Virus record (IMG/VR): IMGVR_UViG_3300050132_000038
Location: 124,001-188,000 of that record
DNA length: 64,000 nucleotides
Direction: 5' to 3' (one strand)
In this document: positions 15,530-64,000 of the stretch, piece after piece
How positions within the stretch are numbered: position 1 is the first letter of the stretch
How the letters are laid out: every line of letters begins with the position of its first letter
Position numbers and translations under genes: made by a program
Notes under the pieces: model-generated
The model's input: the letters and a program-made list of their open reading frames with translations, nothing else
What the model was told of the DNA's origin: nothing
The model's database searches: none

Positions 15530-16024
15530 ATGGAACAACAGGGCCTCGGCAAGATCACCAAACAGATTTATCGGTCAACGAAGACGTACGGCCACAACGA
15601 AGGTCTCTCCTGCGCCTTCCGTCAGTGGCGTGCAACTCATTCGCACTGTAGCCTCATCCATGGCTATGCCTTGTCATTCAAATTCGTGTTCGCATGTTCT
15701 GTCCTGGATGAGCGCCATTGGGTTCAGGACTTTGGCGCACTAGCTGAACTTAAGGACGGGCTGAAGCAGCACTTCGATCACAAGACAGTAGTTGCGATGG
15801 ACGATCCTCTCCTAGACTCTTTCGAGGAGATGGAGCGTCTGGGACTACTGCGCTTAACCATCCTTCACTCCGTAGGATGTGAGGAGTTTGCCCAATTTGG
15901 ATGGCAACTAGCCAATGCCTTAGTTACTAAAGCTCATCCAGACGGCCGGGTGTGGGTGGAATCCTGTGAAGTTGCAGAGCACGGTGCCAATTCAGCTATC
16001 TATACGGTGGAGCCAGTATTGTAA
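15530..16024 (+). CDS. queD: 6-carboxy-5,6,7,8-tetrahydropterin synthase
   Basis: SHCSLIHGY, DFG, FDHK, GCE, EHGANSA motifs. Confidence 0.9.
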   Translation: MEQQGLGKITKQIYRSTKTYGHNEGLSCAFRQWRATHSHCSLIHGYALSFKFVFACSVLDERHWVQDFGALAELKDGLKQHFDHKTVVAMDDPLLDSFEEMERLGLLRLTILHSVGCEEFAQFGWQLANALVTKAHPDGRVWVESCEVAEHGANSAIYTVEPVL

Positions 16025-16707
16025 TGCGTAAGACAATTGTTTTGATCCAGGGCTTGCCTGGATCTGGTAAGACCACGCTTGCAGATATTCTGTCGGAGAA
16101 GACGGGTGGGGCTCGTGTTAATGCCGACTACGTGCGTAACAATGTCAACACTGATCTGGGATTTTCTCCAGAGGATCGTATTACCCAAGCACATCGCATG
16201 GGGAAGATTGCTAACATTGCACTATCAGGGGCAAACGATTTAGCCATCGTAGACTTTGTGTGCCCCACACCTGCTACACGTAAAGCGTTCAAGCAGGCAA
16301 CCGACTATCGCATCTTCAATGTATGGATGGACACTATTCAAATCGGTCGCTTTGAGGATACCAATAAGCTTTACGTAGGTCCCCAAGACGTGGACTACAA
16401 GGTTGAGATCTATCTGTCGGAAGAGGGCTTCCACAAGATCGCTGAGGACATAGCGTTTCAACTTGCCCTTGCTAGTAATCGAAAGACTAAACGCTATTAC
16501 CTGCGTTACAACACCTTGGTAGGGGACACTGATCTTCGCTGGCGAGTTATAGACGCTGACACCAAAGAGGAGCAGTTAGCAAAGAGCTTTAGAGTGGACG
16601 GCCTTACACTATTCCCCGCATCTTCAATAGAGCATGGGGTAGTCAAGTGGAATGTGGCAGTTGATGGTCAAGCTGTCTGGACTGATAACTCTGTATTTTT
16701 CAAGTGA
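16024..16707 (+). CDS. Adenylylsulfate (APS) kinase-like P-loop kinase with extra C-terminal domain
   Basis: GLPGSGKTT; NADYVR...DLGFSPEDR (APS kinase signature region); VDFVCP. Confidence 0.75.
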   Translation: MRKTIVLIQGLPGSGKTTLADILSEKTGGARVNADYVRNNVNTDLGFSPEDRITQAHRMGKIANIALSGANDLAIVDFVCPTPATRKAFKQATDYRIFNVWMDTIQIGRFEDTNKLYVGPQDVDYKVEIYLSEEGFHKIAEDIAFQLALASNRKTKRYYLRYNTLVGDTDLRWRVIDADTKEEQLAKSFRVDGLTLFPASSIEHGVVKWNVAVDGQAVWTDNSVFFK

Positions 16708-17546
16708 CCATGAAAATTCATATCGTTAGTCTACAACGCTCAGGCTCTAAGAGTCTGTACAACTCTATCCACAGTGCACTAAATAAGCCCCTCACATTCT
16801 CTAACGGAGACTCGTTGGGCGAGTATCTGCACTGCTGGTCGGAGTACGGCTACAAGTTTAGCTTTAGCGCTACGAAACCCTTCGATCCTACGGCCTGCAT
16901 ACTGTTTAGGACTCACCCAGAGTTTGGGGGCTACGTGGGTTCCAATTTCACGCCTGCCTACCATCAAGGTGTGCTCAGTTGGAAACCCACAGATTACAAA
17001 GAAGTCCTTAGCTACGCAGACATAGAGCACCGCCTAAAGGCGATCCACCTTAGCCGTAGTTTGGTGGTAAAGACCCAGCTTGCCTCACTCCTCGAGGAGT
17101 TCGACCCTGCACAGCGTGTATGTATTAAGAATGCCGTGTTGGATCCGAGCCTATTCAACCGAACCATATTCTTGGTTCCTGATGATCTCGAACGCTGGCT
17201 ATGCTCGAATTATCTGTGCGACCATTCAGGCGTGTTTGTACAGTGCAAGTCTCAGGCGGAGGCAGCGGCTGCTTTCAAGGCAACCCCTGTTACGATTCCC
17301 ACTGAATACTTAGACTTGTTGAGCTCTAGGTATCGAGTACATAAAAATCTTGCGTGTGGGGCTGATGGGTTAGTAATCCACACGTCTGCCCTTACTAGTG
17401 AAAGTACCCGTACGCTACTTGAGTTTACTCTCGGTATAAAAGTACACGTTAAAGACGAAAAGGAATTCTCCGCCTTTGACTACTCAACCATGATTAAGAA
17501 TTACGACGGGGTTATCCATGCGGCAGATCAGTTACGACGAGCTTAA
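16704..17546 (+). CDS. Sulfotransferase-like protein (Stf0-type P-loop fold)
   Basis: N-terminal IVSLQRSGSKSL 5'-PSB-like loop; GEY; VVK; IFL..D.L...S; C-terminal Y...IKNYD. Confidence 0.55.
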   Translation: MTMKIHIVSLQRSGSKSLYNSIHSALNKPLTFSNGDSLGEYLHCWSEYGYKFSFSATKPFDPTACILFRTHPEFGGYVGSNFTPAYHQGVLSWKPTDYKEVLSYADIEHRLKAIHLSRSLVVKTQLASLLEEFDPAQRVCIKNAVLDPSLFNRTIFLVPDDLERWLCSNYLCDHSGVFVQCKSQAEAAAAFKATPVTIPTEYLDLLSSRYRVHKNLACGADGLVIHTSALTSESTRTLLEFTLGIKVHVKDEKEFSAFDYSTMIKNYDGVIHAADQLRRA

Positions 17547-18003
17547 GATCATTGCGAAGAACGTGGCAAAGAGTATTTCTACGAAGGGCGGTACTTATAG
17601 GCTAGTAGCAGTAGCTCGTGGTGGACTAACCTTTGCCCAACTAGTGTCCTACTACTTGTCAAAGCCCCTAGAATTCTTTATCCCCGCATACTCAGAGATG
17701 ACTGGTAGTGACTATTGGGAAATGTACACCCACTTCATTTTTCTTGAGGACGTCATTGCAGAAGGTCGTACCTTCCGTATCATCGACGACTATGTTACCC
17801 GCCAGGGGTTACCTAGCTGGGAAATGATACCTGTGGTCCTGGATAGTAACGCCCCTGCCGATATACAGGACCGTGTAAATACATATGGAATGAAGACGTC
17901 CGACTGGATTGTGTTTCCCCATGAAGACGTTGCACACACAGTTGAAGGCGATCGTGGATTGTTCCGCGCTGGCACGTCTGCAAATTCCAACCCTATCATT
18001 TAA
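17518..18003 (+). CDS. Type I phosphoribosyltransferase (Gpt/Hpt-like)
   Basis: VAVARGGL; PRPP loop FIFLEDVIAEGRT; C-terminal WIVFPHE. Confidence 0.8.
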   Translation: MRQISYDELKIIAKNVAKSISTKGGTYRLVAVARGGLTFAQLVSYYLSKPLEFFIPAYSEMTGSDYWEMYTHFIFLEDVIAEGRTFRIIDDYVTRQGLPSWEMIPVVLDSNAPADIQDRVNTYGMKTSDWIVFPHEDVAHTVEGDRGLFRAGTSANSNPII

Positions 18004-18007
18004 GACC

Positions 18008-18778
18008 ATGAAGATCCTTATCTTATTCAGTGGTGGGCTCGATAGCCTTATTATGAAACGCTACGCAGAGGTTAACTACCCAGACGCTGAGGTAGTCTGT
18101 GCGTTCTACGATATTGGACAGGAGTACAATCATAAAGAGGTTGCAGCTCTCCCACCATTCGTTGAACAGTTAACGTTGGACTGGCTTACACCAAACGTCG
18201 AAGCCCAGAGTAAAGATGGCTCGGACTCGGGTAACATCTATATTCCTGGTCGCAACCTTGTTCTTGCAGTTGCCGCAGCCTGCAAGTACCTACCGGATCA
18301 AGTTTGGCTCGGTGCCCTGCTCGGTGAAGTACACGAGAGTGCTACCGATAAGAACTGGAAGTTCCTGGATCAAGCAAGTGACACGCTATCCTACGTGTTG
18401 TCTCCGTTCAAGCCTAACGGTGTACAGGTTAAGTTCCCCTTAGCTAACGCTGGATTCAACAAGCTGACGGCCACCAAGTGGGCATTAGACAATGGCGTTC
18501 CAGTTGAGGCAATCCTGAAATCTAGCTCCTGTCTATCTGGTGAGCACGGTAACTGCGGCAAGTGTGTAGTGTGCTTTAGACGTTGGGGAATCTTCAAACA
18601 ACTCGGAATACCCGAAGAACAGTACAATGTTCATCCCTTAGAATCTACAGAGAATGAATTGATAGCAGCCGAGATGCTGCTTGGAACTTATTACGATGAA
18701 CACCGCATCCAAGAAATTGTCCCCGCCCTCCCCGACTGGTACAAAGAAAAAGTTATCGAAAAGTACAGAACAAAATAA
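18008..18778 (+). CDS. queC: 7-cyano-7-deazaguanine synthase
   Basis: ILFSGGLDS PP-loop; YIPGRN; SSC...CGKCVVC zinc site; start at ATG 18008. Confidence 0.9.
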   Translation: MKILILFSGGLDSLIMKRYAEVNYPDAEVVCAFYDIGQEYNHKEVAALPPFVEQLTLDWLTPNVEAQSKDGSDSGNIYIPGRNLVLAVAAACKYLPDQVWLGALLGEVHESATDKNWKFLDQASDTLSYVLSPFKPNGVQVKFPLANAGFNKLTATKWALDNGVPVEAILKSSSCLSGEHGNCGKCVVCFRRWGIFKQLGIPEEQYNVHPLESTENELIAAEMLLGTYYDEHRIQEIVPALPDWYKEKVIEKYRTK

Positions 18779-20177
18779 GGTTGAAATCCTTCCTGCATCC
18801 GTTAACAGTCTGGCATTGAATGAGTTCATTGGCGTTAAGTACGGTCGGCCCAAACAGAAGGTATGGACTGCAGAACGTGTTAAGGGATTGTTCACGATCT
18901 ATCTACCTGATCGTACCGTTATGATAGGCCGTGGTAACTCAAACACGCTAGGCATTACCACTGAGGATCTGGACTCGTACTTCATGACCTCCCCAATGTC
19001 GAATCCCTCTATGCTGAAAGCTATTGGGTACAAGTACATGATGGTGACACCAGAGCGTCAGGCCACTTCGGATTACATGCGCCGGAATGGTATCATCAAG
19101 GTGTTCAGTGACTCCGGTGGGTTCCAGATGTCCAAGGGTGTTACTGAGTTCGTAGACCCCGACTTCGTTGCTTCCTTTTACAAGCAGCGTATAGACTACG
19201 GCATTGGCCTGGATGTACCACTGCCCAAGCATCTGCAGAACACCGATTGGTTCATGCGTATGTGTGACGTGCAGATCGCGAACAACAAGTACATCGCTGA
19301 ACGTCTTAAAGGTAGCCCCTGTGAATTGTATGATGTTAGCCATGGTCTTACACTAGAGAATAGAAAGCGATTCACTCACAAGGTGCTGGATAACAAAGTA
19401 GGTGTTGGCCTATCGCTAGGTGGTATTGGTCAAGCCAACTATGATACGTTGCACACGTCTACTATCATGGCCGTGCTTAATCTATGCTACGTACTGGACG
19501 CGTCAAAGGGCGTGTACGATAGATTCCACGTGCTGGGTACTACAGCCCCCTTCATGATCTCGGCGTATCACATCTTAACCGCGCTAGGAGTAGCTCCTTT
19601 CATTAGTGCGGATTCTTCGACGTACGCGCAGACCGGCCTAGCTATGAATACCAGGGGTACCATTTACCATAATGGGGCTGCCACTATCCCAAGCTTTCCT
19701 TTGGAGGATGAACACGTGTCCTATGGACTCCCTTGCTCCTGCCCGGTGTGTAGTATTGCTGGCTATCCGCAGGTGTATAGGTTGTCTGGCCCAGCTAATG
19801 GTATCCATACTCTGCACATAATGTATAAGTTGTCTGAAGTGGTTGGGGAGTACACTAAGCAGATGCTAGAGGGTCGTCCTACGCTAGAGCACCTACTTAC
19901 CCTAGTGGCTCCAAATAAATCCCAGTATCCAGTGTATCGCGCCCTCTACAAATTCTTGTTGTCGATGGACAAGGGCTTTAACAAGGCATGGGCTCTGCAT
20001 AAGGATTTCCTGCAACCGTATCTCCGCAAATCTAAGGAAGCTGACGGCCTGTTTAGTGCGTACTCTAAAATGCCAGAAGCTTTGAAGAAGGCGGAAGAGA
20101 ACACTACTAAGGCTATCTTGAGGTACGAGAAATTCCACGGCATTGGTCCTCAGGTAAAGACGAAGGGGAAGAAGTAA
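18681..20177 (+). CDS. dpdA: TGT-family transglycosylase, DpdA-like (start uncertain, 18681 or 18696)
   Basis: DSGGFQ, GLDVP, HVLG, SADSST catalytic motifs; CSCPVC...H zinc site; lies among que genes. Confidence 0.75.
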   Translation: MELITMNTASKKLSPPSPTGTKKKLSKSTEQNKVEILPASVNSLALNEFIGVKYGRPKQKVWTAERVKGLFTIYLPDRTVMIGRGNSNTLGITTEDLDSYFMTSPMSNPSMLKAIGYKYMMVTPERQATSDYMRRNGIIKVFSDSGGFQMSKGVTEFVDPDFVASFYKQRIDYGIGLDVPLPKHLQNTDWFMRMCDVQIANNKYIAERLKGSPCELYDVSHGLTLENRKRFTHKVLDNKVGVGLSLGGIGQANYDTLHTSTIMAVLNLCYVLDASKGVYDRFHVLGTTAPFMISAYHILTALGVAPFISADSSTYAQTGLAMNTRGTIYHNGAATIPSFPLEDEHVSYGLPCSCPVCSIAGYPQVYRLSGPANGIHTLHIMYKLSEVVGEYTKQMLEGRPTLEHLLTLVAPNKSQYPVYRALYKFLLSMDKGFNKAWALHKDFLQPYLRKSKEADGLFSAYSKMPEALKKAEENTTKAILRYEKFHGIGPQVKTKGKK

Positions 20178-20617
20178 TGCGTGAACTGAAATACATAGAC
20201 TTAGAGAACGTATACGGCTATCCCTCGTTATCTCCTACCTTTATCAAGTGGCTGAAAGCTCGTGGTAACGTTCAACTTGTTATAGCCTTACACAACTTGG
20301 AAAAGGTTGAGCGCACAAAAGAGTTCATCATAGTGGTAACTGGGCTACCTTATCTGGAGTCGTGTGGTGTACCCATCTTAGGGTATAACTGCACTGAGGT
20401 AGGTCTGTGGCATCGAGGTGATCTTCCAACTAAGTTGAGACCTAATAAGGTACACATCTTACTCCCCAAGTTCCAAGGGGAGATGGCGGACACAAAGACT
20501 CTATACAACTTGTATGTAAATGATGTTATGAGCGAAACTTTCAGTCCTCGCTTCACTACGTACCATACCACGGAATGCTTGAACGACCGAGTATTCCGTC
20601 ACAAGAGAAAGACATGA
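20177..20617 (+). CDS. Hypothetical protein in the deazaguanine cluster
   Basis: Coupled to the DpdA-like gene (TAATG) and queE (ATGA). Confidence 0.6.
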   Translation: MRELKYIDLENVYGYPSLSPTFIKWLKARGNVQLVIALHNLEKVERTKEFIIVVTGLPYLESCGVPILGYNCTEVGLWHRGDLPTKLRPNKVHILLPKFQGEMADTKTLYNLYVNDVMSETFSPRFTTYHTTECLNDRVFRHKRKT

Positions 20618-21414
20618 TTCCAATTATCCAGCACCGCGACAAGGCTATAACTCCAGCGAAGTATAAGCCATTCAAGGACAACCTACTTATAACTTCCGTG
20701 TTCCGCACGATTCAGTCCGAAGGTCCGTTCTCAGGTCACCCAGCGGTATTCGTCCGTACCGCTGGTTGTAACTTCGGAGCAAAAGATCCCAAAGGAATGT
20801 GCTCGTGGTGTGACACGGCCTTCGAGTTCGACAAAGGCTTACTGTACTCGCCTGAGAAGCTCCTAGAGGTTGTGCTGACCTTGCCTGGGTATAACTCTAA
20901 GGACATCTTGGTATTAACTGGTGGGGAGCCTACCCTCCAGCATAACCTGATTAAGTTCATGGAGATCGCGCAGCCTTGCTTCCGGGCTATTCAGATTGAG
21001 ACTAACGGGACACAACCCTCATTCTTCTTGGCACTCCTCAGTACTCAGGTACACCTCCCCCATGTAGTAGTGAGTCCTAAGGCATCGTCTACGACAGGGA
21101 CGTATCCAATGATCTCAGACAGAGTTCTAGGTGCGACTCGAGCACTCAAGTTTGTAGTCACGGCAGACCCTAGTGATCCGCAGCACGTAGTTCCTGAGTG
21201 GGCATTTAGGAATCAACACTATGGATACGAGCTTTACGTCTCCCCGATGGCTATATACAAACGAGCTTACGACGGTGAAGTATCCAACGCCTGGGACCCA
21301 ACGCTGATCGACCAAGAAGCAACCGCCCGCAACTATGCCTATGCTGCAAAGTACGCAATGGAACATAACTGCTTGCTTTCAATCCAGGGTCATCTCTTCA
21401 CGGCAGTTCCCTGA
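20614..21414 (+). CDS. queE: 7-carboxy-7-deazaguanine synthase (radical SAM)
   Basis: TIQSEGPFSG.PAVFVR; C-x10-C-x2-C; LTGGEP; IETNG; SPK. Confidence 0.9.
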   Translation: MIPIIQHRDKAITPAKYKPFKDNLLITSVFRTIQSEGPFSGHPAVFVRTAGCNFGAKDPKGMCSWCDTAFEFDKGLLYSPEKLLEVVLTLPGYNSKDILVLTGGEPTLQHNLIKFMEIAQPCFRAIQIETNGTQPSFFLALLSTQVHLPHVVVSPKASSTTGTYPMISDRVLGATRALKFVVTADPSDPQHVVPEWAFRNQHYGYELYVSPMAIYKRAYDGEVSNAWDPTLIDQEATARNYAYAAKYAMEHNCLLSIQGHLFTAVP

Positions 21415-22074: not shown

Positions 22075-22728
22075 ATGACTTATTCAAAAGATAAAGATGT
22101 AGGTTTCGCAGTTCACCAGCACCTTGTAGAAGTTGGTGTTGAAACCCCGTTCACTCAGAAGAAGATCGACAAGACAAATCTTGAATATCTGTTCACCCAG
22201 ATCATGCGTGAGGTCGGGCTTGATCTAAAGGATGATTCTCTGAACGAGACCCCGCGCCGTCTTGCTAAGCTGTACTCAGACGAGTACTTCTACGGCCTGG
22301 ACTACAATAACTTTCCCAAGGCTACCGTAGTAGCGAACAAGTTTAACTATGACGAGATGCTTATCGAGCGTAACGTTAAAGTTAACTCGCTGTGCGAACA
22401 TCATTTTTTAAGTATCCTAGGTGGTGCCTTCATTGCATACATTCCCGAGAAGAAAGTATTAGGCTTGTCTAAGCTCAACCGCATTGTGGACTTCTTCTGC
22501 CGGCGTCCTCAGATTCAAGAGCGACTTACTGCCCAGATCTATCACGCACTATCCTTCCTTCTTGAGACAGAGAACGTTGCCGTGGTTATTGAAGCGGAGC
22601 ACCTCTGTGTCAAGACCCGCGGTATTATGGACGCGTGCTCGGATACCGTTACCTCGCAGTTAGGCGGCTCATTCAGGATTCCTGAGGTGCGTGCTGAGTT
22701 CATCTCCTTGTCTAAGGGGCTACGATGA
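22075..22728 (+). CDS. folE: GTP cyclohydrolase I
   Basis: ETPRR; SLCEHH; GLSKLNR; RRPQIQERLT; HLC. Confidence 0.95.
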   Translation: MTYSKDKDVGFAVHQHLVEVGVETPFTQKKIDKTNLEYLFTQIMREVGLDLKDDSLNETPRRLAKLYSDEYFYGLDYNNFPKATVVANKFNYDEMLIERNVKVNSLCEHHFLSILGGAFIAYIPEKKVLGLSKLNRIVDFFCRRPQIQERLTAQIYHALSFLLETENVAVVIEAEHLCVKTRGIMDACSDTVTSQLGGSFRIPEVRAEFISLSKGLR

Positions 22729-22965: not shown

Positions 22966-23433
22966 ATGGGTCGCCGTAATCTCGTAGTCTTCGATATAGA
23001 TGGTGTACTTATGGACTCAGAGCATCGCCTACCTCATATGCTGGCAGGTGACTTCCCTAAGTACTTCAAGATGTGGCAGTACGATACACCTCTACCCCCA
23101 GGTATTGCAGTGTGCAAAATGTTTATTGCTAATCCTGAGTACCGTGTGATCTTCTGTACAGGAAGAAGCGACACGCTTGTGCACAGGATTGGTACCCTAA
23201 CTCAGTTGCAAAACAATATTAGCCCCAAGATCCGTGACTCGCAACTGTTAATGCGGGAGTATCCAGAGGTTGGTCCTCACCTGCACGATACAGTGAAGAA
23301 GCCGTTGATGATTGAACAGGCAGGCTACTCACTCGATAACATCTTCATGGTATTTGAAGACCGGAATTCAATAGTAGATATGTGGAGGGAACGGGGTATT
23401 ACTGTCTATCATACACAGGACGGAGATTTCTAA
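22966..23433 (+). CDS. HAD-superfamily phosphatase (polynucleotide kinase/phosphatase-like domain)
   Basis: VVFDIDGVL; CTGR; FEDR...VDMWR. Confidence 0.8.
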   Translation: MGRRNLVVFDIDGVLMDSEHRLPHMLAGDFPKYFKMWQYDTPLPPGIAVCKMFIANPEYRVIFCTGRSDTLVHRIGTLTQLQNNISPKIRDSQLLMREYPEVGPHLHDTVKKPLMIEQAGYSLDNIFMVFEDRNSIVDMWRERGITVYHTQDGDF

Positions 23434-23943
23434 ATGAAAGCTGTCGACATAAACAAAGGGAGTTGGCACTTCTGGTTGGCCTCCCAGGTTAGCTGGAAGC
23501 AGACCTACTACAGTAACAAACTTTGTAAGCGAGTACCTACTGACTTCTGTTACTATGTGCGCCGAGTCATCCTAGGATTTATTTGGGTAGCTATCTTAGC
23601 TTCAGTTGCACTAGCTCTAGCTGGTCTCTACCTGTACTCTGGGTACTACACAGTACAGTGGGTGCTAGATATGATCCACCAGGGTAAGTTCTTCCAAGGT
23701 CCAGGTGAGGCTGGCCCCTTCCTATTCATCACCAGCATGACCTTGGCCGTAGGTATAGCACTAGGTGTTATATTGTGTATCGCTCAAGCACTAAAGTGGC
23801 GTGATACTAGGTGCTATTTGGCACGAGAGCTTGCTCGTAGTAGAGCTGAGCCAACACTCCTTCTTAAAGAACCCTCCTTCGTACAAGTTGCGTATCGTTC
23901 TATCAAAGACAAAGTGTGTTTCCGTATTAACATCGTGGAGTAA
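23434..23943 (+). CDS. Membrane protein
   Basis: Two long hydrophobic segments. Confidence 0.65.
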   Translation: MKAVDINKGSWHFWLASQVSWKQTYYSNKLCKRVPTDFCYYVRRVILGFIWVAILASVALALAGLYLYSGYYTVQWVLDMIHQGKFFQGPGEAGPFLFITSMTLAVGIALGVILCIAQALKWRDTRCYLARELARSRAEPTLLLKEPSFVQVAYRSIKDKVCFRINIVE

Positions 23944-23947
23944 GACA

Positions 23948-24856
23948 TTGGACAATAAACTATTCACCGGCAAGCAGTGCTCCGTTACAATTATCGAAGA
24001 CTCAGTGTCGCAGTTGACTCGTAAGAGACTGACTACCCTGCAGTTGCGCTACTGGCGTGCTGTACACTCGGAGTTCATGACGCACCGGATGTTCTCCCGT
24101 AACGCTAGTTCGAGCCGTGCTATTCCTACTGAGAGGTTGCTTTATCAAGTTGAGGAATTTCCTGCGTGTCCTGTACACTGGGGTAAGAACGAGTCAGGTA
24201 TGCAGGCGCGCGAAGAGCACAATGAGTTGGTGAAGCACCCTGTAACCGGAGAGTTCATGTCCCGCGAGGAAGCCTGGCGAGAAGCTTCTCGCAGCTCTAG
24301 TGCCTGGGCTCGTACCTTCGCTGATGCTGGTTATCATAAGCAAATCGTTAACCGCTTGGTTGAGCCTGCGTCCTTCATCTCTGTTGTAGTGACTGCGAGT
24401 GAGTGGGATAACTTCTTTGCCTTGCGTGACCACGAGGACGCACAGCCTGAGATTCAAGACTTAGCACGAACCATGAAGAAGGCAATGGATGCTTCTTCGG
24501 CGCGTGTTATTCATCCGGGTAAGCTTAGTGACCCTCGCACTTGGCATCTCCCCTACATTCAGATGTACGAGCGCCAGGCTTATACCGTTCCTCAGCTTCT
24601 CGGAATGTCTGCTGCACGTAATGCTCGGGTATCCTACCTGACTCACGACAATCAGAACCCGAAGATCGAAAATGACATTGGGTTGTATCGTCGTCTGGTG
24701 GAGTCGAAGCCCTTGCATGCTTCACCCTTGGAGCACCAAGCGTACTGTTCTGCATCCAAGGAACCCTCGGCTAACTTCACCGGTGGTTGGATTCAGCATC
24801 GTCGCTTGCTGGAAAACGCAGGGTCGATTGACAACCTAGCAGTAGCTCTTAAGTAA
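23948..24856 (+). CDS. thyX: Flavin-dependent thymidylate synthase
   Basis: EFMTHRMFSRNASSSRAIP; FFALR; HASPLEH; start set at TTG 23948. Confidence 0.88.
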   Translation: MDNKLFTGKQCSVTIIEDSVSQLTRKRLTTLQLRYWRAVHSEFMTHRMFSRNASSSRAIPTERLLYQVEEFPACPVHWGKNESGMQAREEHNELVKHPVTGEFMSREEAWREASRSSSAWARTFADAGYHKQIVNRLVEPASFISVVVTASEWDNFFALRDHEDAQPEIQDLARTMKKAMDASSARVIHPGKLSDPRTWHLPYIQMYERQAYTVPQLLGMSAARNARVSYLTHDNQNPKIENDIGLYRRLVESKPLHASPLEHQAYCSASKEPSANFTGGWIQHRRLLENAGSIDNLAVALK

Positions 24857-28641: not shown

Positions 28642-30219
28642 ATGGCAACAAAGAAACCAATTAAAAAGCCTGTAGCAGCGAAGAAAGCTCCGGCGAAGAA
28701 AGCAATGGAAGTCACTATCAAGGAAGCTCCTCTTAGGAAGACTAAGGGTAGAGCTAAGCCTGTAGCTGACGACGTAGAGGAAGCTATCGAAGAAGCAGTG
28801 GGTACCAAGCGTAAGGGTAAAGCAGGACTCGACACTACCAAGTTTGACGTTAAATCCCTATACGCTTCTACAGTAGATGAAGTTGCACGTAAGCAGGACT
28901 TCGATAGTGACCTGCTGGAAGACACACCACCCATGAGCACCGGCATTCTAATGCTTGACCTTATCGAAGGTGGCGGTATTCGACCGGCATGGTACACGCA
29001 CTTTGGGCCGGAGCAATCGTGTAAGACCACAGGTGCTCTCACCATTATGGCGGCGGCTATCCAGGCTGAGGTGCCTATCATCGCCCTCGCCGATTATGAA
29101 GGTAGTACCCGCAACAGTCGTCCGTATGTAGGTAACATTCTCAAGACGTCTGGCCTAAAGGTTTCTATCAAGGACGTGTTCGGTAAGAAAGATCCTAATA
29201 CGGGTAAGTGGCTGATTGAGCCCCTGGTTCGCTATCGTTCAGAGACTCTCGGTGAGAAGTTCTTCGACTACATGGCTGACCTGCTGCGTAAGCTACCGGA
29301 TAAGAAGTTCATTGCGGGTAAGTGGTGGCTTGTGTTCGACGATGATAAGGCCAACAAAGCAAAGCTTGGCGATCACATTGTACCCTCGATGGCAAAGAAG
29401 TACGGTAAAGGTTTGTGGGTCGAAGCTCCGGACGGTAACTTGCAAGCACTGGTATTGGTAGACTCGTACCCGGCAATGAACCCTACGGCTAACGACGATG
29501 ACGATGCTAACAACAGCTTGGCATTGCAGGCACGTATGTTTAGTAAGCACCTGCCACGTGTTAAGGGTCGTATGGCTGCGAAGATGGTTGCCGTTATCGG
29601 TATCAATCAATTACGTGCTGTTCCTATGGCTATGTACGGTCCGAAGGAAACCGAACCAGGTGGTGTAGCTCTCAAGTTCAACTCTGACGTTCGTATTCAG
29701 TGGACACCGATTGGCTCTAACCTTCCGTTTATTCCGAAGTTCGATGCTGACGATCGCTTAGAGCATGAGCTCTCTGTAACTGGTAGTGGTAAGGATCGCT
29801 ATCGTTACATACGAATGAAGGCGATTAAGAACAAACTATGGACACCTGGTCGTAAGGGCTTTGTTCGTCTTTGGGTTGAAGACGGTACCGGCGAGGCTCG
29901 TGGTTTCGATCCCTTCTTCGACACGGTGATGTACCTGAAAGAAACAGGGCAGCTTAAAGGGAGCTCCTCGCGTAAGCCATTCCAACTGGATCTCGATGGT
30001 TTCGGTAAGGCCAAGAAGCCTGTTAGCTGGATGACACTAAAGCAGTGGGTGTTGGGTACGAAGGAAGAGAAGGTTAAGATTTGTACCACCCTTGGCTACA
30101 AACCCCTGGACTTGCGTAAGTACTGCTTCAAGCAAATGTCCACAGGTAAGGCAGAGGAATTGTTTGTTGCACTACGTGGTAGTAACACTAAGATTGCTGA
30201 CGACGAAGGCGACGAGTAA
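28642..30219 (+). CDS. recA: RecA/UvsX-like recombinase
   Basis: Walker A GPEQSCKTT; Walker B VLVDS; NQLR; PGGVALKF; K-rich N-terminal extension. Confidence 0.85.
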   Translation: MATKKPIKKPVAAKKAPAKKAMEVTIKEAPLRKTKGRAKPVADDVEEAIEEAVGTKRKGKAGLDTTKFDVKSLYASTVDEVARKQDFDSDLLEDTPPMSTGILMLDLIEGGGIRPAWYTHFGPEQSCKTTGALTIMAAAIQAEVPIIALADYEGSTRNSRPYVGNILKTSGLKVSIKDVFGKKDPNTGKWLIEPLVRYRSETLGEKFFDYMADLLRKLPDKKFIAGKWWLVFDDDKANKAKLGDHIVPSMAKKYGKGLWVEAPDGNLQALVLVDSYPAMNPTANDDDDANNSLALQARMFSKHLPRVKGRMAAKMVAVIGINQLRAVPMAMYGPKETEPGGVALKFNSDVRIQWTPIGSNLPFIPKFDADDRLEHELSVTGSGKDRYRYIRMKAIKNKLWTPGRKGFVRLWVEDGTGEARGFDPFFDTVMYLKETGQLKGSSSRKPFQLDLDGFGKAKKPVSWMTLKQWVLGTKEEKVKICTTLGYKPLDLRKYCFKQMSTGKAEELFVALRGSNTKIADDEGDE

Positions 30220-39475: not shown

Positions 39476-40582
39476 ATGTCTTCATCTAAAGAGCATACTT
39501 ATGCTTTCCGTGTGCCATCGTCCTCACTTTTCGATAAAGCACTCACCAAATTAGTAAAACAAGTAGAGACGAAGGCTGCCTCTACTGACTCCGAGCTCGA
39601 CCCAGATCCAATCTACTATGTGTACGTACTGCTTGATCCACGAAAACCTGGAGCATTTGAGTACACACTTCCCGGTAGCAAGCTAATCGCTTTTAAGTAT
39701 CAACCCTTCTACGTGGGTAAGGGTAAAGGCGACAGGCTGAAGACTCATGTGAAGTCTACTCGTAAGCGTGTGGCTAGGGGTCGGAAGCTCACACATAAAG
39801 AAAACACGATTAAGAAGATCGAAAGTTTGGGTCTTAAAGTAATTGAGAAGCGTATAAGTTTCGACCTCCCTGAGGCAGTATCATTTGCCAAAGAGATAAT
39901 GTTAATCTCCACAATTGGTAGAGTCGATCTGGGTACAGGATTACTTACTAATTGGTCAGGCGGCGGTGAGGGCGTTATAGATTTATCCCCTGAGACGATT
40001 CGGAAACATAGTGAATCGCAGAAGGCCGTACGTGCTGCGTTAACTCCTAAGCAAAATGCAAAGCGTAATAAGCTCACCAGCGAAAGCGTAGCAGCTGAGT
40101 GGAAAGCTAGATCACCTGACGCTAAGAAAGTCCACGCACAGAAGACCATTGCCCAGATGGAAGCACTAACGGATAAAGAGCGGCGACAACTTACTGCCCC
40201 TGCCCGTAAAGCATACAAGAAAGTTCTAGATTCCCTAACTGATGAAGAGCGCAACAAGCTATTAGGTAGTGGATCTAAAGCTTGGTGGGCCTCTATGACA
40301 GACGAGGAACGAGAGTCACAGAACAAGAAGGCAGGTACTGCTCTGAGTAAGAGTCTACAGGCGAGATCCCCTGAGGCAAAAGCCAAGCACTATAACAATC
40401 AGCGTAACGCGCAGCTAGCTCGAATAGCTAATATGACTCCGGAAGAGCGGGAAGCTGAACGAGCACGAAAGCGCGCCCAACTTGACGCGCTACCTATACA
40501 GCAGTGTCCTCACTGTGGATATGAGGGTAAGGGGCCTAACATGAAGAAGTATCATTTTGATAGATGCAAGTATAAGTCTTAA
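39476..40582 (+). CDS. Free-standing GIY-YIG-family homing endonuclease
   Basis: YYVYVLLDPRKP...PFYVGKG.G.R...H; LTN; helical repeats; C-terminal CPHC...YHFDRC. Confidence 0.75.
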   Translation: MSSSKEHTYAFRVPSSSLFDKALTKLVKQVETKAASTDSELDPDPIYYVYVLLDPRKPGAFEYTLPGSKLIAFKYQPFYVGKGKGDRLKTHVKSTRKRVARGRKLTHKENTIKKIESLGLKVIEKRISFDLPEAVSFAKEIMLISTIGRVDLGTGLLTNWSGGGEGVIDLSPETIRKHSESQKAVRAALTPKQNAKRNKLTSESVAAEWKARSPDAKKVHAQKTIAQMEALTDKERRQLTAPARKAYKKVLDSLTDEERNKLLGSGSKAWWASMTDEERESQNKKAGTALSKSLQARSPEAKAKHYNNQRNAQLARIANMTPEEREAERARKRAQLDALPIQQCPHCGYEGKGPNMKKYHFDRCKYKS

Positions 40583-47411: not shown

Positions 47412-48473
47412 ATGTCCACGAACTACCAGGAGCTCGCTGAGCTCTACTTCCACGAGTACGACCAAAATTCCCTTGAAGACCCGTATGAAAAGAAGCGGCG
47501 CAAAGTCTTTAAAGAATTAGCAGCCGCTATAATAACCTCGGAATTCCCAGAGCTAGAAGCTCAGATCGCAATAGCTGCCTGGAACTTAACCGCAGAGTTA
47601 GCCGTTACTGGTAACAAAGGTAAAGGACGTAGACTTAAGTTAGATAAAATCTTCTACGTGTACGTTCTTATGGATCCCCGTAAGCCAGGCCAGTGGATTA
47701 TAGATCTCCCAGGTGGGAAAATTATTGAGCTTCCTTTCCTACCTTTCTACGTAGGAAAAGGGTACGGTGGTAGAATGAAGGCACACGCCCGACACGCCAG
47801 AGCTAAGCCCACTCCTGTAGCAGGTGAGCATAAAGCTAACACTATTCGTAGTCTTCATCGCCTTGGCCTAGAACCTATAGAGAAACGAGTCAGTGGATTC
47901 TCTATAGAGGCCGTAGCACTAATGAAGGAAGTGGGGTTAGTGAAAGCTGTTGGTCGTGGTAGGAATGGACCACTTACTAATCTTAGTGACGCCGGGGAGG
48001 GCCTAAGCGGCTACAAGCCCACTGAGGAAACTAAAGCTAAAATAGCTGCTAAGCTAGATCAGATCGTAGCCAAAAGAAAAGCTACCTATGCGGGCAAGAG
48101 TCAAGAAGAGTTAGACGCTATCAACGAGAAGAATAGCCTAGCGCATCGTGGTAAGAAACAGAGTGTTGAAACACTTGAGAAGCGAGTAGCACAATTACGT
48201 GGTACCACCCGCCCGACGGAAGTAGGTACTAAAATTAGTGCTTCTAAGATGGGGCATGAGACCTCAGTAGAAACACGGGCAAAGCAGAGCGCTGCAAAGA
48301 AAGGTCGACCGGCGCTCAATAAGGGTACTACTCATACTGAGGAAACTAAAGCTAAGATGCGCGCAGCTAAAGCTGCTCAGCCTATAAAAATTTGTGAGCA
48401 CTGTGGCACAGAAAGTAAAGGTACTGCCTTTACTAGATGGCATGGTGACAACTGTAAGTTTAAGAAGGATTAG
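47412..48473 (+). CDS. Free-standing GIY-YIG homing endonuclease with NUMOD3-like repeats
   Basis: FYVYVLMDPRKP...PFYVGKG; KGTTHTEETKAKM-type repeats; C-terminal CEHC...WHGDNC. Confidence 0.8.
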   Translation: MSTNYQELAELYFHEYDQNSLEDPYEKKRRKVFKELAAAIITSEFPELEAQIAIAAWNLTAELAVTGNKGKGRRLKLDKIFYVYVLMDPRKPGQWIIDLPGGKIIELPFLPFYVGKGYGGRMKAHARHARAKPTPVAGEHKANTIRSLHRLGLEPIEKRVSGFSIEAVALMKEVGLVKAVGRGRNGPLTNLSDAGEGLSGYKPTEETKAKIAAKLDQIVAKRKATYAGKSQEELDAINEKNSLAHRGKKQSVETLEKRVAQLRGTTRPTEVGTKISASKMGHETSVETRAKQSAAKKGRPALNKGTTHTEETKAKMRAAKAAQPIKICEHCGTESKGTAFTRWHGDNCKFKKD

Positions 48474-61703: not shown

Positions 61704-64000
61704 TTACCACCTCCTGCGAGTTAGTACACGGTAATATCCAGTGGTAATTACTGTACCAGTACCTGCAACAGTTAGCCCTACGTAATCAGCATCTGTCCAT
61801 ATAGCTGCACTATTTCTGGTGGTAATACCTGCCTGCCAGCCTGTGAGCGCATACCAGTAGTCAATAGCATAGCGTTCGTTAGTACCTACTGCGTCATCCG
61901 CTATGCGAACTTCCGTAGCAAATGCAGTGTACCCTAAGTTATGATTTTTGTTGTACATAGTATTAGTCGCTACCATAAACAACCCACTATCGTACTGGCC
62001 CTTCAACGCATAGCTAATAGCACTAGTAACTAGCGTGGTGCTAGTCATTGCCTCCCCTACATACACCCTGTTCTTCTGAGTAAACATAGGATTAGCTAAG
62101 GCTGTTGTAGATGGTCCACTCACCTGAGTCATCGTCATGTTAGGAACTGAGAAGAAGTCAGACGAGTAACCGACGGTTGCTATGTTGGGAGCGACAGTAG
62201 GAACCGCGTAGGTCATACCATTCGGATGCTGGCAATACGGTAGGAATTCAAACTTGTCGATGTAGCCTGCAAACCACTGGGTATTGTTAGCTCCCGCGCC
62301 GACTGCTATGTATGAGACTGGACATACCTTTATAGTACTGGCGAATGTAAAATCGAGCAGCCCGTTAACGTATCCATAGTACTTACCGTCTACTGAGTCG
62401 TATACGAGCTCTGTAAATTGCCACATTCCGCTGTTAATGGTGTTAGTTCCCGGCGTACCATTCACTATATCCCAGGTAGTCCCTGTAGATGATAAATAGT
62501 ATTGAATCTTACTCTCGTACACTACGATTTGAGCCCCATAGTTTGTAGTCGTACTTGAGCTAGCATCAAAAATATCCTGAACAGTAGTAGTCGCGGCGTT
62601 AGTGGGCCAAATCCAACATCTTAAAGACCAACTACCGTTCCCCAAACTCTTGAAACCTGAGCTCAGTATATAGTTAGATGTACCATTCAAAGCAAAGTTA
62701 GTACCAGTACCTCCTAGTGCCCCTGTACCAAACTTATACTGGGTATTCTGAATAGTTGCACCACCCATCGCAGTCCACATGTTCCCGAAGTCATCCAGGA
62801 TCATCGTAGAGCCAGAGGTACCATTAAACTGCAACACTGATTGAGCACTTTGATTGTAGGAGTACCCGTACTGCACGGGAGCTAACGTAGAGGTCCACGT
62901 AACCGAAGTAGGGCTTGTGTAGTCAGCACTAATGAACGATGTGTTGCTCATAGGTAGTGTAACTATGTTAGGCATATCCGCACTAATAGTTGCCCCATAG
63001 TTAGTAGCCCCTGCAGCAAATGAAATCACCATAGGCTGCATAGTGGCCGAAAGATTCACCGTCATCCCTGTACCCGGGGTCAACATCGAGGCATAACCTA
63101 AACTATTAGTCACCCCCATCTGCACGGTCTGTCTTGTGTAGCCTAGAGCTTGTGCTTGGGCTAATGGAACTAGCTGATTAGAGGAGGTAGCTACCGGACC
63201 CATCACTGGCCCAGTAAAGGTACCGCCAGTTATAGGTACCATATTAGCAACAGTAGAAGACTGCTGACTAATGATCTTAATCTCAGCTCCTAGCATCGCT
63301 GGAACATTCAGCATCACCGAGGTGCCATTACTTGCCGTGTAGTCAGTACTCAGTAATAATGTTCCATTCTCAAACACCTGTACAGCACCCGGAGTGTACC
63401 CTACGTTGAACGTTGTCTGCCCCGCAGTTGCGATGAATTCATAAATCGAGATTGCACCAATAGCAGAGAATGCGCTAAACGCTATCACTGATATTTCATC
63501 GTTCAAATTCAAACCAAACGGAAAGGTGATGTACGCACCTGTGGTCGCTACATAGTCCGTAGCAGGTAACTCTAGACCCATTCGCGTGACGATGATGTTG
63601 CCAGGAGTGTAACTCACATCAATCTGTGTCTGGCCTTGCGTGGTAGCGATAAAGTCATACTTCGTTAGCGTGTTAGCACCCGCAGATGACGCCAGAATAA
63701 CGTTTGTACCATCTGAGTACGCAATGATCGACTTACCTTGCGGAGCCACCGCGGTCATACCTCCACCAGATATAGGTGTCAACTGGAACATAGTCAACAC
63801 ACCGTTACCTGTACCAAACAGCATTGCAGTTACAGTACCTAACCTGCCTTCTGCATCTAGGTAGGTGCCCGTCCAGGTCAACGTATTACCAGTAGTTGGT
63901 GGCAGTGCTAACGTTACCAACCCTCCTGTAGTTATCATGTAGTCAGTGATCGTTACTGCAGTCGCAAATGTCTCAATGTATGAGGTTGCAGCCATCCCGG
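61704..64000 (-). CDS. Tail fibre/adhesin with LamG-like domain; 5' end possibly beyond the window
   Basis: Repeated ATAGQTTF...NG...DY Ig-like units; LQFNG...WQFTELVYD...YVNG...GYID LamG pattern. Confidence 0.7.
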   Translation of the reverse strand, partial: GMAATSYIETFATAVTITDYMITTGGLVTLALPPTTGNTLTWTGTYLDAEGRLGTVTAMLFGTGNGVLTMFQLTPISGGGMTAVAPQGKSIIAYSDGTNVILASSAGANTLTKYDFIATTQGQTQIDVSYTPGNIIVTRMGLELPATDYVATTGAYITFPFGLNLNDEISVIAFSAFSAIGAISIYEFIATAGQTTFNVGYTPGAVQVFENGTLLLSTDYTASNGTSVMLNVPAMLGAEIKIISQQSSTVANMVPITGGTFTGPVMGPVATSSNQLVPLAQAQALGYTRQTVQMGVTNSLGYASMLTPGTGMTVNLSATMQPMVISFAAGATNYGATISADMPNIVTLPMSNTSFISADYTSPTSVTWTSTLAPVQYGYSYNQSAQSVLQFNGTSGSTMILDDFGNMWTAMGGATIQNTQYKFGTGALGGTGTNFALNGTSNYILSSGFKSLGNGSWSLRCWIWPTNAATTTVQDIFDASSSTTTNYGAQIVVYESKIQYYLSSTGTTWDIVNGTPGTNTINSGMWQFTELVYDSVDGKYYGYVNGLLDFTFASTIKVCPVSYIAVGAGANNTQWFAGYIDKFEFLPYCQHPNGMTYAVPTVAPNIATVGYSSDFFSVPNMTMTQVSGPSTTALANPMFTQKNRVYVGEAMTSTTLVTSAISYALKGQYDSGLFMVATNTMYNKNHNLGYTAFATEVRIADDAVGTNERYAIDYWYALTGWQAGITTRNSAAIWTDADYVGLTVAGTGTVITTGYYRVLTRRRW

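Follow-up and report, generated by a model that had tools for sequence, protein, structure and literature searches.

Phages that replace guanine in their DNA with a 7-deazaguanine carry FolE, QueD, QueE and QueC together with DpdA, and the modifications described, including dPreQ0, dADG, dG+, dPreQ1 and their derivatives (PMC6884629, PMC10516641), bear nitrile, amide, amidine, aminomethyl, methyl, formyl or carboxyl groups, or hydrogen. No described system of this kind includes an APS kinase, a sulfotransferase-like protein or a purine phosphoribosyltransferase (PRT), and the words 'kinase' and 'phosphoribosyl' do not occur in the 2023 survey (PMC10516641). Our literature searches linking deazaguanine or DNA hypermodification with sulfotransferase, APS kinase or PRT found nothing relevant. 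Kinases of the APS type are found in other settings. In assimilatory CysC and in the kinase domain of PAPSS, APS is phosphorylated to PAPS. In the Streptomyces ascamycin and nucleocidin pathways, which are part of secondary metabolism and carry their own ATP sulfurylase, an APS kinase, a sulfotransferase and a purine PRT act on an adenine rather than a deazaguanine nucleoside, with no DNA transglycosylase (PMC4257720). In the Campylobacter MeOPN donor pathway (Cj1415-Cj1418) a 3'-kinase step yields a PAPS-like 3'-phosphorylated donor, but a glutamine kinase, a cytidylyltransferase and a hydrolase are needed as well (PMC11800397). Finally, in the ORF238-ORF230 cluster of Ralstonia phage phiRSL1, which is annotated but, as far as we found, uncharacterised, a two-domain kinase heads a set of DNA-modification genes that also contains a sulfotransferase.

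The locus analysed here lies in a window of 64,000 nucleotides (positions 124,001 to 188,000) of the IMG/VR metagenomic contig IMGVR_UViG_3300050132_000038, of 218,861 bp, which belongs to a phiRSL1-like jumbo phage. As in the described systems, a full set of genes for preQ0 synthesis and a TGT-family DpdA-like gene are found in one cluster, although the DpdA-like protein is long and too divergent to be recognised by Pfam. Within this cluster lies a conserved trio made up of an APS-kinase-like gene (ORF A), a gene for a very divergent sulfotransferase-like protein (ORF B) and a purine PRT-like gene, which may serve to add sulfate to a deazaguanine compound.

Features of the 7-deazaguanine cluster, with positions in the 64,000-nucleotide window
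Coordinates	Strand	Feature	Observations
15530..16024	+	queD (6-carboxytetrahydropterin synthase-like)	Pfam PTPS 3e-11; PHROG QueD-like 1.3e-37; stop TAA overlaps the ORF A start ATG by 1 nt (TAATG at 16022-16026)
16024..16707	+	ORF A, 227 aa: short APS-kinase-like domain (about residues 1-150) plus a conserved all-beta C-terminal domain (about 155-227)	Stop TGA (16705-16707) overlaps a GTG at 16704 and lies 2 nt before the ATG at 16710
16704..17546	+	ORF B, divergent sulfotransferase-like protein; 280 aa from GTG 16704 or 278 aa from ATG 16710	ATG 16710 is the likelier start, because the homologues begin MK(V/I)HI
17518..18003	+	6-oxopurine PRT-like gene, 161 aa	Start ATG at 17518; overlaps the ORF B end by 29 nt
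18041..18778 (about)	+	queC-like PP-loop synthetase	Pfam QueC 3.8e-8; PHROG QueC-like 8.4e-17; SGGLDS and C-terminal Cys motifs
18681..20177	+	DpdA-like transglycosylase, 498 aa; start codon uncertain	NCBIfam TgtA 1.6e-4; PDB archaeosine tRNA-guanine transglycosylase 3e-4; 33% identical to the 'tRNA guanine transglycosylase' of Achromobacter phage Motura; CSCPVC...H zinc motif; pI 9.3
20177..20617	+	Small basic protein following the DpdA-like gene	Clearly conserved after DpdA in loci L003, L015 and L018; small ORFs at the same position in L016, L017 and Motura align only loosely (about 20% identity); pI 9.1
20575..21414	+	queE (radical SAM)	Pfam Radical_SAM 5.3e-9; PHROG QueE-like 2e-35
22075..22728	+	folE (GTP cyclohydrolase I)	Pfam 9.1e-57
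22966..23433	+	HAD phosphatase of the PNKP 3'-phosphatase type; possible PAP 3'-phosphatase or nucleotide phosphatase (inference only)	Pfam HAD_PNKP 2.6e-16; conserved in the cluster in L003, L015 and L018; also present in phiRSL1-type loci that lack que genes

The original prediction described a gene pair coupled to queD and overlapping the PRT gene ahead of queC and the DpdA-like gene, one member with an APS kinase signature and the other with a sulfotransferase-like loop, and this observation was confirmed. The kinase motifs GLPGSGKT, NADYVR and DLGFSPEDR are present in ORF A, and LQRSGSKSL and IFLVPDD in ORF B. The absence of an ATP sulfurylase from the window, raised in the same prediction, also held among the 38 window ORFs scanned with Pfam, a scan that did not extend to the small ORFs, one large ORF at the window edge (61704-63995) or the rest of the 219-kb genome.

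ORF A matches the Pfam family APS_kinase (PF01583) over residues 4-117 with E=2e-15 (57.6 bits against a gathering cutoff of 21.1), and all 21 of its sequence hits in PDB are APS kinases. Its AF2 model (pLDDT 92.3) has an APS-kinase fold, the top 44 Foldseek hits in PDB being APS kinases or APS-kinase-fold domains of bifunctional enzymes, with target TM-scores of 0.6-0.78 and rmsd of about 3-4 A. Across 25 orthologues the P-loop, N33-A34-D35, R38, F47 and R52 are invariant and Q55 nearly so. D35, R38, F47, R52 and Q55 align with the second Asp of the DGD motif, the two Arg, the stacking Phe and the Asn of APS kinases, respectively the catalytic Asp and residues contacting APS in the P. chrysogenum and PAPSS1 enzymes. 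On the other hand, ORF A differs from assimilatory enzymes in several respects. It scores far below the cutoff of the NCBIfam equivalog TIGR00455 apsK (49.3 against 138.7 bits), its core is only about 145 aa with a shortened lid, DGD is changed to NAD and FISP to FVCP (the Ser being Cys or Asn in the family), the Asn is replaced by Gln, and a beta domain is added at the C-terminus. It also matches AAA_33 (37 bits, above the cutoff of that family) and the PHROG family 'polynucleotide kinase'. ORF A was considered as a 5-hmdU-type DNA kinase, but this was rejected because phiRSL1 carries a separate HMUDK; L022 likewise carries one alongside the kinase orthologue, and neither ORF A nor ORF B has a hit to HMUDK_hel.

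ORF B has no hit in Pfam, PHROGs or NCBIfam, and belongs to a family of about 34 clusters among 1.84 billion representatives. In 32 sequences of the family a loop resembling the 5'-phosphosulfate-binding loop, L(Q/P)R(S/T)(G/A)SK, with R12 and K16, is nearly invariant, and E40, H43 and S168 are also conserved. The 3'-phosphate motif takes the form strand-R-x-D-x4-W-x2-S-helix in distant members, and S168 is invariant, but in the window protein and its close relatives the Arg is Pro (Pro159), so that the substitution pointed out in the original prediction is real but specific to this subfamily. In the AF2 model (pLDDT 83.8, pTM 0.84) the first motif falls in a strand-loop-helix at residues 4-25 (strand 4-8, helix 15-25) and the second in a strand-helix at 153-175. 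Foldseek ranked a heparan 3-O-sulfotransferase first in PDB (6xl8, E=1.6e-3, prob 0.98, TM 0.35-0.39), followed by 3-OST-1, Teg14 and NST, and thirteen proteins named sulfotransferase were among the top 40 in BFVD. These matches are weak, however, since TM-scores range only from 0.3 to 0.56, the highest being in BFVD, and P-loop NTPases are interleaved in the lists. At the profile level no significant match to a sulfotransferase family was obtained. Sulfotransfer_4 is the only Pfam family that recurs across members (5 of 32, best E=0.012), but its weak matches cover only the N-terminal loop. A comparison of the ORF B family with 25 phage Sulfotransfer_2 proteins by hhalign gave E=0.067, on the same loop only and no better than against the kinase P-loop, and ORF B is therefore not a Sulfotransfer_2 member. 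The ORF B profile rendered no hit at E<=10 among PDB sequences, scans of viral contigs with broad ORF B alignments found nothing, and no similarity was detected by BLASTP to phiRSL1 ORF237 (TAGT) or ORF232 (Sulfotransfer_2).

The PRT matches NCBIfam XPRT (3.8e-6), whereas its match to Pfam Pribosyltran (3.7e-4; 20.3 bits) is below the family cutoff of 26.3. The profile of its family matches the purine PRT structure 1vdm at 1.8e-6 over positions 2-145 of 166, and then HPRT, HGPRT and XGPRT structures, and the PRPP loop FLEDVIAEGRT is conserved, with E77-D78...G83-R84-T85 invariant. The protein is thus full-length homologous to 6-oxopurine PRTs.

Lack of linkage of the pair to que genes in related phages had been set beforehand as a result that would count against the prediction, and the opposite was observed. 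In eight independent contexts, down to 26-30% identity and in two phage lineages, namely the window and the viral loci that we designate L003, L005, L007, L015, L016, L017 and L018, ORF B is adjacent to the PRT and QueC-like genes with a DpdA-like gene nearby. The kinase is upstream in all of these except L016, and also in L012. The absence of the kinase from L016 fits a donor that some hosts supply themselves. A nucleotide search of the cluster against 50,697 phage records found no match, nor did tblastn of ORF B and of the PRT against the same records.

The kinase family also neighbours genuine sulfotransferases in other phages. In phiRSL1 the orthologue, 43% identical and at the same syntenic position, heads a thymidine-hypermodification cluster with a Sulfotransfer_2 gene (3.9e-21), three TAGT glycosyltransferases, a 5-hmdU DNA kinase and a thymidylate-synthase-like gene, but with no que genes, PRT or ORF B homologue, and the kinase likewise heads similar clusters at three related loci (L022, L024 and L025). 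Of the 80 best viral loci with this kinase, 31 have a Sulfotransfer_2-like gene within 10 kb, at a median gap of 561 bp. The other 49 have none within that distance, and one kinase-bearing phiRSL1-like locus, L028, shows no sulfotransferase, so that the kinase may be a lineage core gene. The chromosomal context of a Cupriavidus 175-aa relative annotated as 'adenylyl-sulfate kinase' was uninformative, being surrounded by transposases.

The best reading, which we hold only tentatively and at somewhat less than even confidence, is that the trio is a tailoring set of the deazaguanine cluster. In this view ORF A would phosphorylate the 3'-OH of host-made APS to give PAPS, ORF B would use that donor to sulfate a 7-deazaguanine compound, and the Gpt/HPRT-like PRT would couple the base to PRPP, either making the deazaguanine ribotide on which ORF B acts or clearing the guanine released by DpdA. 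The HAD 3'-phosphatase could remove the PAP by-product. What our analysis shows are the domain and fold assignments at the strengths given above, the conservation of motifs, the linkage of the genes and the recurrent kinase-sulfotransferase neighbourhood in phages, whereas the conversion of APS to PAPS by ORF A, sulfate as the transferred group, the nature of the acceptor, and the presence of a 7-deazaguanine or of the product in virion DNA are inferences. A further difficulty is that PreQ0, ADG and CDG have no hydroxyl to sulfate, and no QueF or oxygenase was found in the cluster. The 146-aa ORF that follows DpdA was considered as a QueF-like reductase, but it has no Pfam or PHROG hit, and similar small ORFs also follow DpdA where ORF B is absent, as in Motura. 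The original prediction that a PAPS supply-and-use module might sulfate a deazaguanine derivative, a DNA sugar or a virion glycan, with the alternative that the kinase acts on nucleotides, is partly supported. Nothing shows that sulfate ends up on DNA, and the transferred group could be other than sulfate. ORF B is not basic (family median pI 6.2, against 9.3 for the DpdA-like protein) and is always paired with the PRT, which points at least as much to a small-molecule acceptor, such as a deazaguanine base, nucleotide or nucleoside.

Among the alternatives, all of which we consider unlikely, the one that survives best is a nucleotide or nucleoside route, in which the PRT makes a 7-deazaguanine ribotide and ORF A and/or ORF B act as nucleotide kinases, or as a nucleoside-sulfating pair in the manner of ascamycin and nucleocidin. 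The product would be a precursor for polymerase incorporation, or a free deazapurine nucleoside or nucleotide acting on the host, while DNA would carry only plain dPreQ0 or dADG inserted by DpdA. In addition to the PRT homology and its constant position beside ORF B, the HAD phosphatase and the pI of ORF B are consistent with this route, as is the ascamycin cluster, in which an APS kinase (AcmB), a sulfotransferase (AcmK) and a PRT (AcmV) are combined to make a 5'-O-sulfated purine nucleoside (PMC4257720). Moreover, Motura has the DpdA orthologue but no PRT, so the PRT is not needed by DpdA as such. In its pure-kinase form, however, this reading conflicts with the lack of a Walker A motif in ORF B and with the APS-type residues kept by ORF A. 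A DpdA-like gene is conserved in every module, so that a DNA endpoint is expected, and no role for a free nucleoside in a phage is known.

It could also be the case, though this appears somewhat less likely, that the donor is PAPS-like but does not carry sulfate. ORF A would then 3'-phosphorylate some other nucleoside-5'-phospho-X compound, and ORF B would transfer X, for example a phosphoramidate or another phospho-linked group, to the deazaguanine compound. An APS-kinase-type step producing a 3'-phosphorylated non-sulfate donor is documented for the Campylobacter enzyme set that makes CDP-phosphoramidate 3'-phosphate (PMC11800397). Cj1415 is APS-kinase-like. The score of ORF A below the apsK equivalog level, its remodelled lid and its extra domain would be compatible with this, as would the cytidylyltransferase-like domain carried by phage relatives of roughly 250 aa, the loss of the canonical 3'-phosphate-binding Arg in ORF B and its distance from every sulfotransferase Pfam family. 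Against it, no enzyme that would make an alternative donor, such as a glutamine kinase or a dedicated nucleotidyltransferase, lies in the conserved module, none of the glutamine kinase, cytidylyltransferase and hydrolase of the Campylobacter pathway is in it, the kinase family is repeatedly adjacent to Sulfotransfer_2 genes, and L016 keeps ORF B without any kinase, which fits a common host metabolite. It is likewise unlikely that the genes are unrelated neighbours, with ORF A a core gene of phiRSL1-like phages (for example the kinase half of a split PNKP-like end-healing pair with the HAD phosphatase), the PRT merely salvaging guanine released by DpdA, ORF B having some other role and the DNA carrying a known modification, since, although ORF A has the AAA_33 and 'polynucleotide kinase' matches, co-occurs with HAD_PNKP in phiRSL1-like loci whatever the modification type (adjacent in L028) and keeps its position next to the primase and peptidase genes in phiRSL1, its sequence and fold matches are specifically to APS kinases, ORF B is found in two phage lineages with the QueC-like, PRT and DpdA-like genes wherever the recovered flanks are long enough, and the kinase accompanies ORF B in the unrelated ~30-kb phage contig L017 (sheath gene downstream), where there is no HAD.

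A more far-reaching possibility, unlikely on present evidence, is that the module makes a sulfated or N-sulfonated 7-deazaguanine that is inserted by DpdA into phage DNA, or that is sulfated in DNA after insertion. This would be the first sulfate-bearing DNA base, and the phiRSL1-type clusters would be a parallel case, with sulfated glycosylated hydroxymethylpyrimidines fed by the same phage APS kinase.

A PAPS-dependent tailoring branch, a kind of tailoring that we found in none of the papers searched, would add a strongly anionic group, or a new activated intermediate, to the chemistry of phage 7-deazaguanines. It would also define a previously unannotated enzyme family, that of ORF B, whose clusters are all unnamed, and it would explain why phages so often carry a short 'cysC' gene, namely to feed their own sulfotransferases rather than to boost host sulfur assimilation. 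The occurrence of the same logic in phiRSL1-type clusters suggests that sulfation may be a general, overlooked layer of DNA hypermodification, with consequences for restriction evasion, for the sequencing of such genomes and for enzyme tools.

The + strand between 15.5 and 23.5 kb carries a tightly packed operon in which genes for 7-deazaguanine synthesis and insertion enclose two genes, here termed ORF A and ORF B, and a phosphoribosyltransferase (PRT)-like gene, and the junctions are as the original prediction described them. The queD stop and the ORF A start are joined as TAATG, the ORF A stop overlaps a GTG and lies 2 nt before the ATG that homologues indicate as the ORF B start, and ORF B overlaps the PRT gene by 29 nt. 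Pfam and PHROG searches confirmed queD, queC, queE and folE. The window belongs to a 218,861-bp IMG/VR contig and has no nucleotide-level relative among 50,697 phage records, but its primase, an HExxH protein and ORF A are syntenic with Ralstonia jumbo phage phiRSL1.

Coordinates of the features of the window and of the compared loci
Location	Feature	Position	Strand
window	queD	15530-16024	+
window	ORF A	16024-16707	+
window	ORF B	16704 or 16710 to 17546	+
window	PRT-like gene	17518-18003	+
window	queC-like gene	about 18041-18778	+
window	DpdA-like gene	18681-20177	+
window	146-aa ORF (small basic protein)	20177-20617	+
window	queE	20575-21414	+
window	folE	22075-22728	+
window	HAD phosphatase	22966-23433	+
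window	membrane-protein ORF	23434-23943	
window	ThyX-like gene	23801-24856	
window	RecA-matching protein	28642-30219	
window	region compared with loci L001, L019, L022 and L028	10999-23433	
window	GIY-YIG (LEM-3-like, NUMOD3) and NUMOD4 homing-endonuclease-type genes	39476-40582 and 47412-48473	
L003 and L018	GIY-YIG (LEM-3-like, NUMOD3) and NUMOD4 homing-endonuclease-type genes	L003:15955-16974; L018:3400-3918	
L001 (phiRSL1)	ORF238-ORF230 cluster	NC_010811.2 162836-179498	
L010	locus of distant ORF B relative P0024	1777-2631	
L013	locus of distant ORF B relative P0036	983-2460	

ORF A matched Pfam APS_kinase at E=2e-15, above the family cutoff, and all 21 of its sequence hits among solved structures are APS kinases. 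An AlphaFold model built on 25 orthologues has pLDDT 92.3, and its first 44 PDB fold matches are APS kinases or APS-kinase-fold domains of bifunctional enzymes, with target TM up to 0.78. Across the orthologues the P-loop, N33-A34-D35, R38, F47 and R52 are invariant and Q55 is nearly so, and in the alignments to the solved structures these residues sit at the positions of the DGD motif, the two phosphosulfate-binding arginines, the adenine-stacking Phe and the Asn of authentic enzymes. On the other hand, the score is far below the NCBIfam equivalog cutoff, the first Asp is Asn, the FISP Ser is Cys, the lid segment is missing, and a conserved all-beta domain of about 75 residues is appended. 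ORF A is therefore an APS-kinase-fold enzyme that probably binds an APS-like nucleotide, although it is not a proven CysC.

ORF B gave no hit in Pfam, PHROGs or NCBIfam, and its profile found nothing among PDB sequences. It is rare, with six relatives in an index of 5.8 billion proteins and 34 representative clusters in an exhaustive profile search of 1.84 billion proteins, none of them named. In a 32-sequence alignment of the family, the N-terminal L(Q/P)R(S/T)(G/A)SK loop is nearly invariant (R12, K16), E40 is invariant, H43 is nearly so, and S168 is invariant. The segment in which the original prediction had noted Pro where Arg is expected (IFLVPDD...WLCS) reads h-h-h-R-x-D-x4-W-x2-S in the distant members, which is the canonical 3'-phosphate-binding strand-Arg/helix-Ser motif, and Pro replaces Arg only in the subfamily that includes the window protein. 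The AlphaFold model (pLDDT 83.8, pTM 0.84) places these motifs on a strand-loop-helix (residues 4-25) and a strand-helix (residues 153-175). Foldseek ranked a heparan-sulfate 3-O-sulfotransferase first in PDB (E=1.6e-3, prob 0.98), with 3-OST-1, Teg14 and NST also listed, and in BFVD thirteen proteins named sulfotransferase were among the top 40, including phiRSL1 ORF232. These matches are nevertheless weak (TM 0.3-0.56), and P-loop NTPases are interleaved with them. The only Pfam family that recurs across members is Sulfotransfer_4 (5 of 32, best E=0.012), which covers only the loop, and hhalign comparison with phage Sulfotransfer_2 proteins found nothing more. We therefore treat sulfotransferase-like as the best available assignment for ORF B, not as an established one.

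The idea of a functional pair was to be abandoned if the two genes were not linked to que genes in related phages, but the opposite was found. Loci with ORF B relatives at 39-51% identity (L003/L004, L005, L007 and L015) keep queD, kinase, ORF B, PRT, queC and DpdA in order, except that L005 has the kinase and queD swapped. Relatives at 26-30% identity were also recovered. In one of these loci, L018, the whole cluster is conserved, whereas in two unrelated phage contigs with sheath genes (L016, about 71 kb, and L017, about 30 kb) the core is DpdA-like, small ORF, [kinase], ORF B, PRT and QueC-like, with no folE, queD or queE within 10 kb; L016 has no kinase. A further locus, L012, has a kinase fragment immediately upstream of ORF B. 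Three short contigs are uninformative or exceptions: L010/L011 have an ATP-grasp gene downstream, that of L010 being a RimK/ATP-grasp gene about 0.9 kb downstream of a distant ORF B relative (P0024), with neither a PRT nor a kinase in the short contig, while in L013 another distant relative (P0036) is followed by a 192-aa ORF and then, two genes downstream, by a PAPS_reduct-family (PP-loop) protein in place of the PRT and QueC. Achromobacter phage Motura has the closest isolate DpdA (33% identity), and its layout in the same slot is queD-queC-AsnB-like-TGT-x-queE-folE, with no kinase, ORF B or PRT. The trio of kinase, ORF B and PRT therefore behaves as an alternative tailoring set, and the PRT is not simply a DpdA accessory.

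The small basic protein (pI 9.1) that follows the DpdA-like gene in the window does so also in L003, L015 and L018, and small ORFs occupy the same position in L016, L017 and Motura (gp027), though they align only loosely; it may be a DpdA partner. Homing-endonuclease-type genes of the GIY-YIG (LEM-3-like, NUMOD3) and NUMOD4 kinds are scattered through these genomes, and some are inserted inside the que cluster of relatives, between queE and folE in L003 and between queC and dpdA in L018. Elsewhere in the window, a ThyX-like gene of 351 aa has an N-terminal extension that overlaps the preceding membrane-protein ORF (the real start is probably further downstream), and a 525-aa protein matches Pfam RecA only over residues 270-354, so that it is an unusually long and divergent recombinase.

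The kinase family was also examined in other phages. In phiRSL1, the 43%-identical two-domain orthologue ORF238 heads a cluster (ORF238-ORF230) with three TAGT glycosyltransferases, sugar-activation genes, an APH-like kinase plus a nucleotidyltransferase, a Sulfotransfer_2 protein (3.9e-21), a 5-hmdU DNA kinase and a thymidylate-synthase-like gene. This cluster, for which we found no published description, looks like a pathway for a glycosylated and sulfated hydroxymethylpyrimidine in DNA. The kinase-bearing loci L022/L024 and L025 repeat this logic with different sugar genes, whereas L028 has the kinase, a HAD and TAGTs but no detected sulfotransferase. A scan of viral contigs rendered at least 574 relatives of the kinase domain at about 45-56% identity. 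This short APS-kinase-like domain is very common in phages, and in the IMG/VR contigs L029-L102, many of them from genomes of about 100 kb, it is 50-56% identical to ORF A and is often part of a protein of about 250 aa with a C-terminal cytidylyltransferase-like segment. Among the best 80 loci, 31 carry a Sulfotransfer_2-like gene within 10 kb, at a median gap of 561 bp, alongside 2OG-Fe(II) oxygenase and carbamoyltransferase genes, and 25 of 32 such Sulfotransfer_2-like genes lie within 1.5 kb, although some loci are near-duplicates and these are not independent counts. This recurrent neighbourhood is the strongest argument that the phage kinase supplies a sulfotransferase donor.

The single PRT sequence gave weak matches (Pfam 3.7e-4; XPRT 3.8e-6), but a profile of seven orthologues matched purine, hypoxanthine-guanine and xanthine-guanine PRT structures over the full length (best 1.8e-6), and the PRPP loop is invariant; from sequence alone, guanine and a 7-deazaguanine cannot be told apart as its substrate.

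The observation behind the original prediction, an APS-kinase-like and a sulfotransferase-like gene embedded in a 7-deazaguanine operon, is confirmed. Its interpretation, that a PAPS supply-and-use pair may sulfate a deazaguanine derivative, a DNA sugar or a virion glycan, is supported only in part. In the best-supported reading, host APS would be converted by ORF A to PAPS, ORF B would transfer the sulfo group to a 7-deazaguanine compound, and the PRT would be coupled to that step. The gene order, the motif conservation, the fold matches and the linkage come from the analysis itself, whereas the activity of ORF A on APS, the transfer of sulfate by ORF B, the acceptor and the presence of any modified base in virion DNA are inferred. 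We hold this reading tentatively, as slightly less likely than not. Two observations bear on the acceptor: the ORF B family is near neutral (median pI 6.2), whereas the DpdA-like protein has pI 9.3, and ORF B is always beside the PRT. Both point to a soluble base, nucleotide or nucleoside rather than DNA, but this is inference, and it appears unlikely that virion DNA carries a sulfated base. A genuine difficulty for simple O-sulfation of the base is that the known deazaguanine intermediates have no hydroxyl group and that no QueF or oxygenase was found in the cluster.

A precedent for an APS kinase, a sulfotransferase and a PRT acting on a purine nucleoside exists in the ascamycin cluster (PMC4257720). 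It can also be the case, however, that the donor is PAPS-like but carries a group other than sulfate, since a 3'-kinase step producing such a 3'-phosphorylated donor has a precedent in Campylobacter Cj1415-1418 (PMC11800397). The HAD phosphatase, which is of the PNKP 3'-phosphatase type and is conserved in the cluster, could hydrolyse PAP or a nucleotide; it also occurs in phiRSL1-type loci without que genes and sits directly after the kinase in L028, and it is a candidate PAP 3'-phosphatase or the other half of a split PNKP.

The 2023 survey of phage 7-deazaguanine pathways does not mention kinases or phosphoribosyltransferases, no paper in the literature searched links deazaguanine or DNA hypermodification with sulfotransferases, and the two main papers on thymidine hypermodification mention neither phiRSL1 nor sulfation. 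The operon differs from the phage 7-deazaguanine pathways surveyed in 2023 in its kinase and PRT. A comparison of the window with L001 (phiRSL1), L019, L022 and L028 indicates that in phiRSL1-like jumbo phages the slot downstream of the primase and the HExxH 'peptidase' holds interchangeable DNA-modification cassettes, namely deazaguanine genes plus kinase, ORF B and PRT, deazaguanine genes plus an AsnB-like gene (Motura), or a thymidine hypermodification cluster with TAGTs, with or without a sulfotransferase. If sulfate really reaches DNA, the chemistry would be new.
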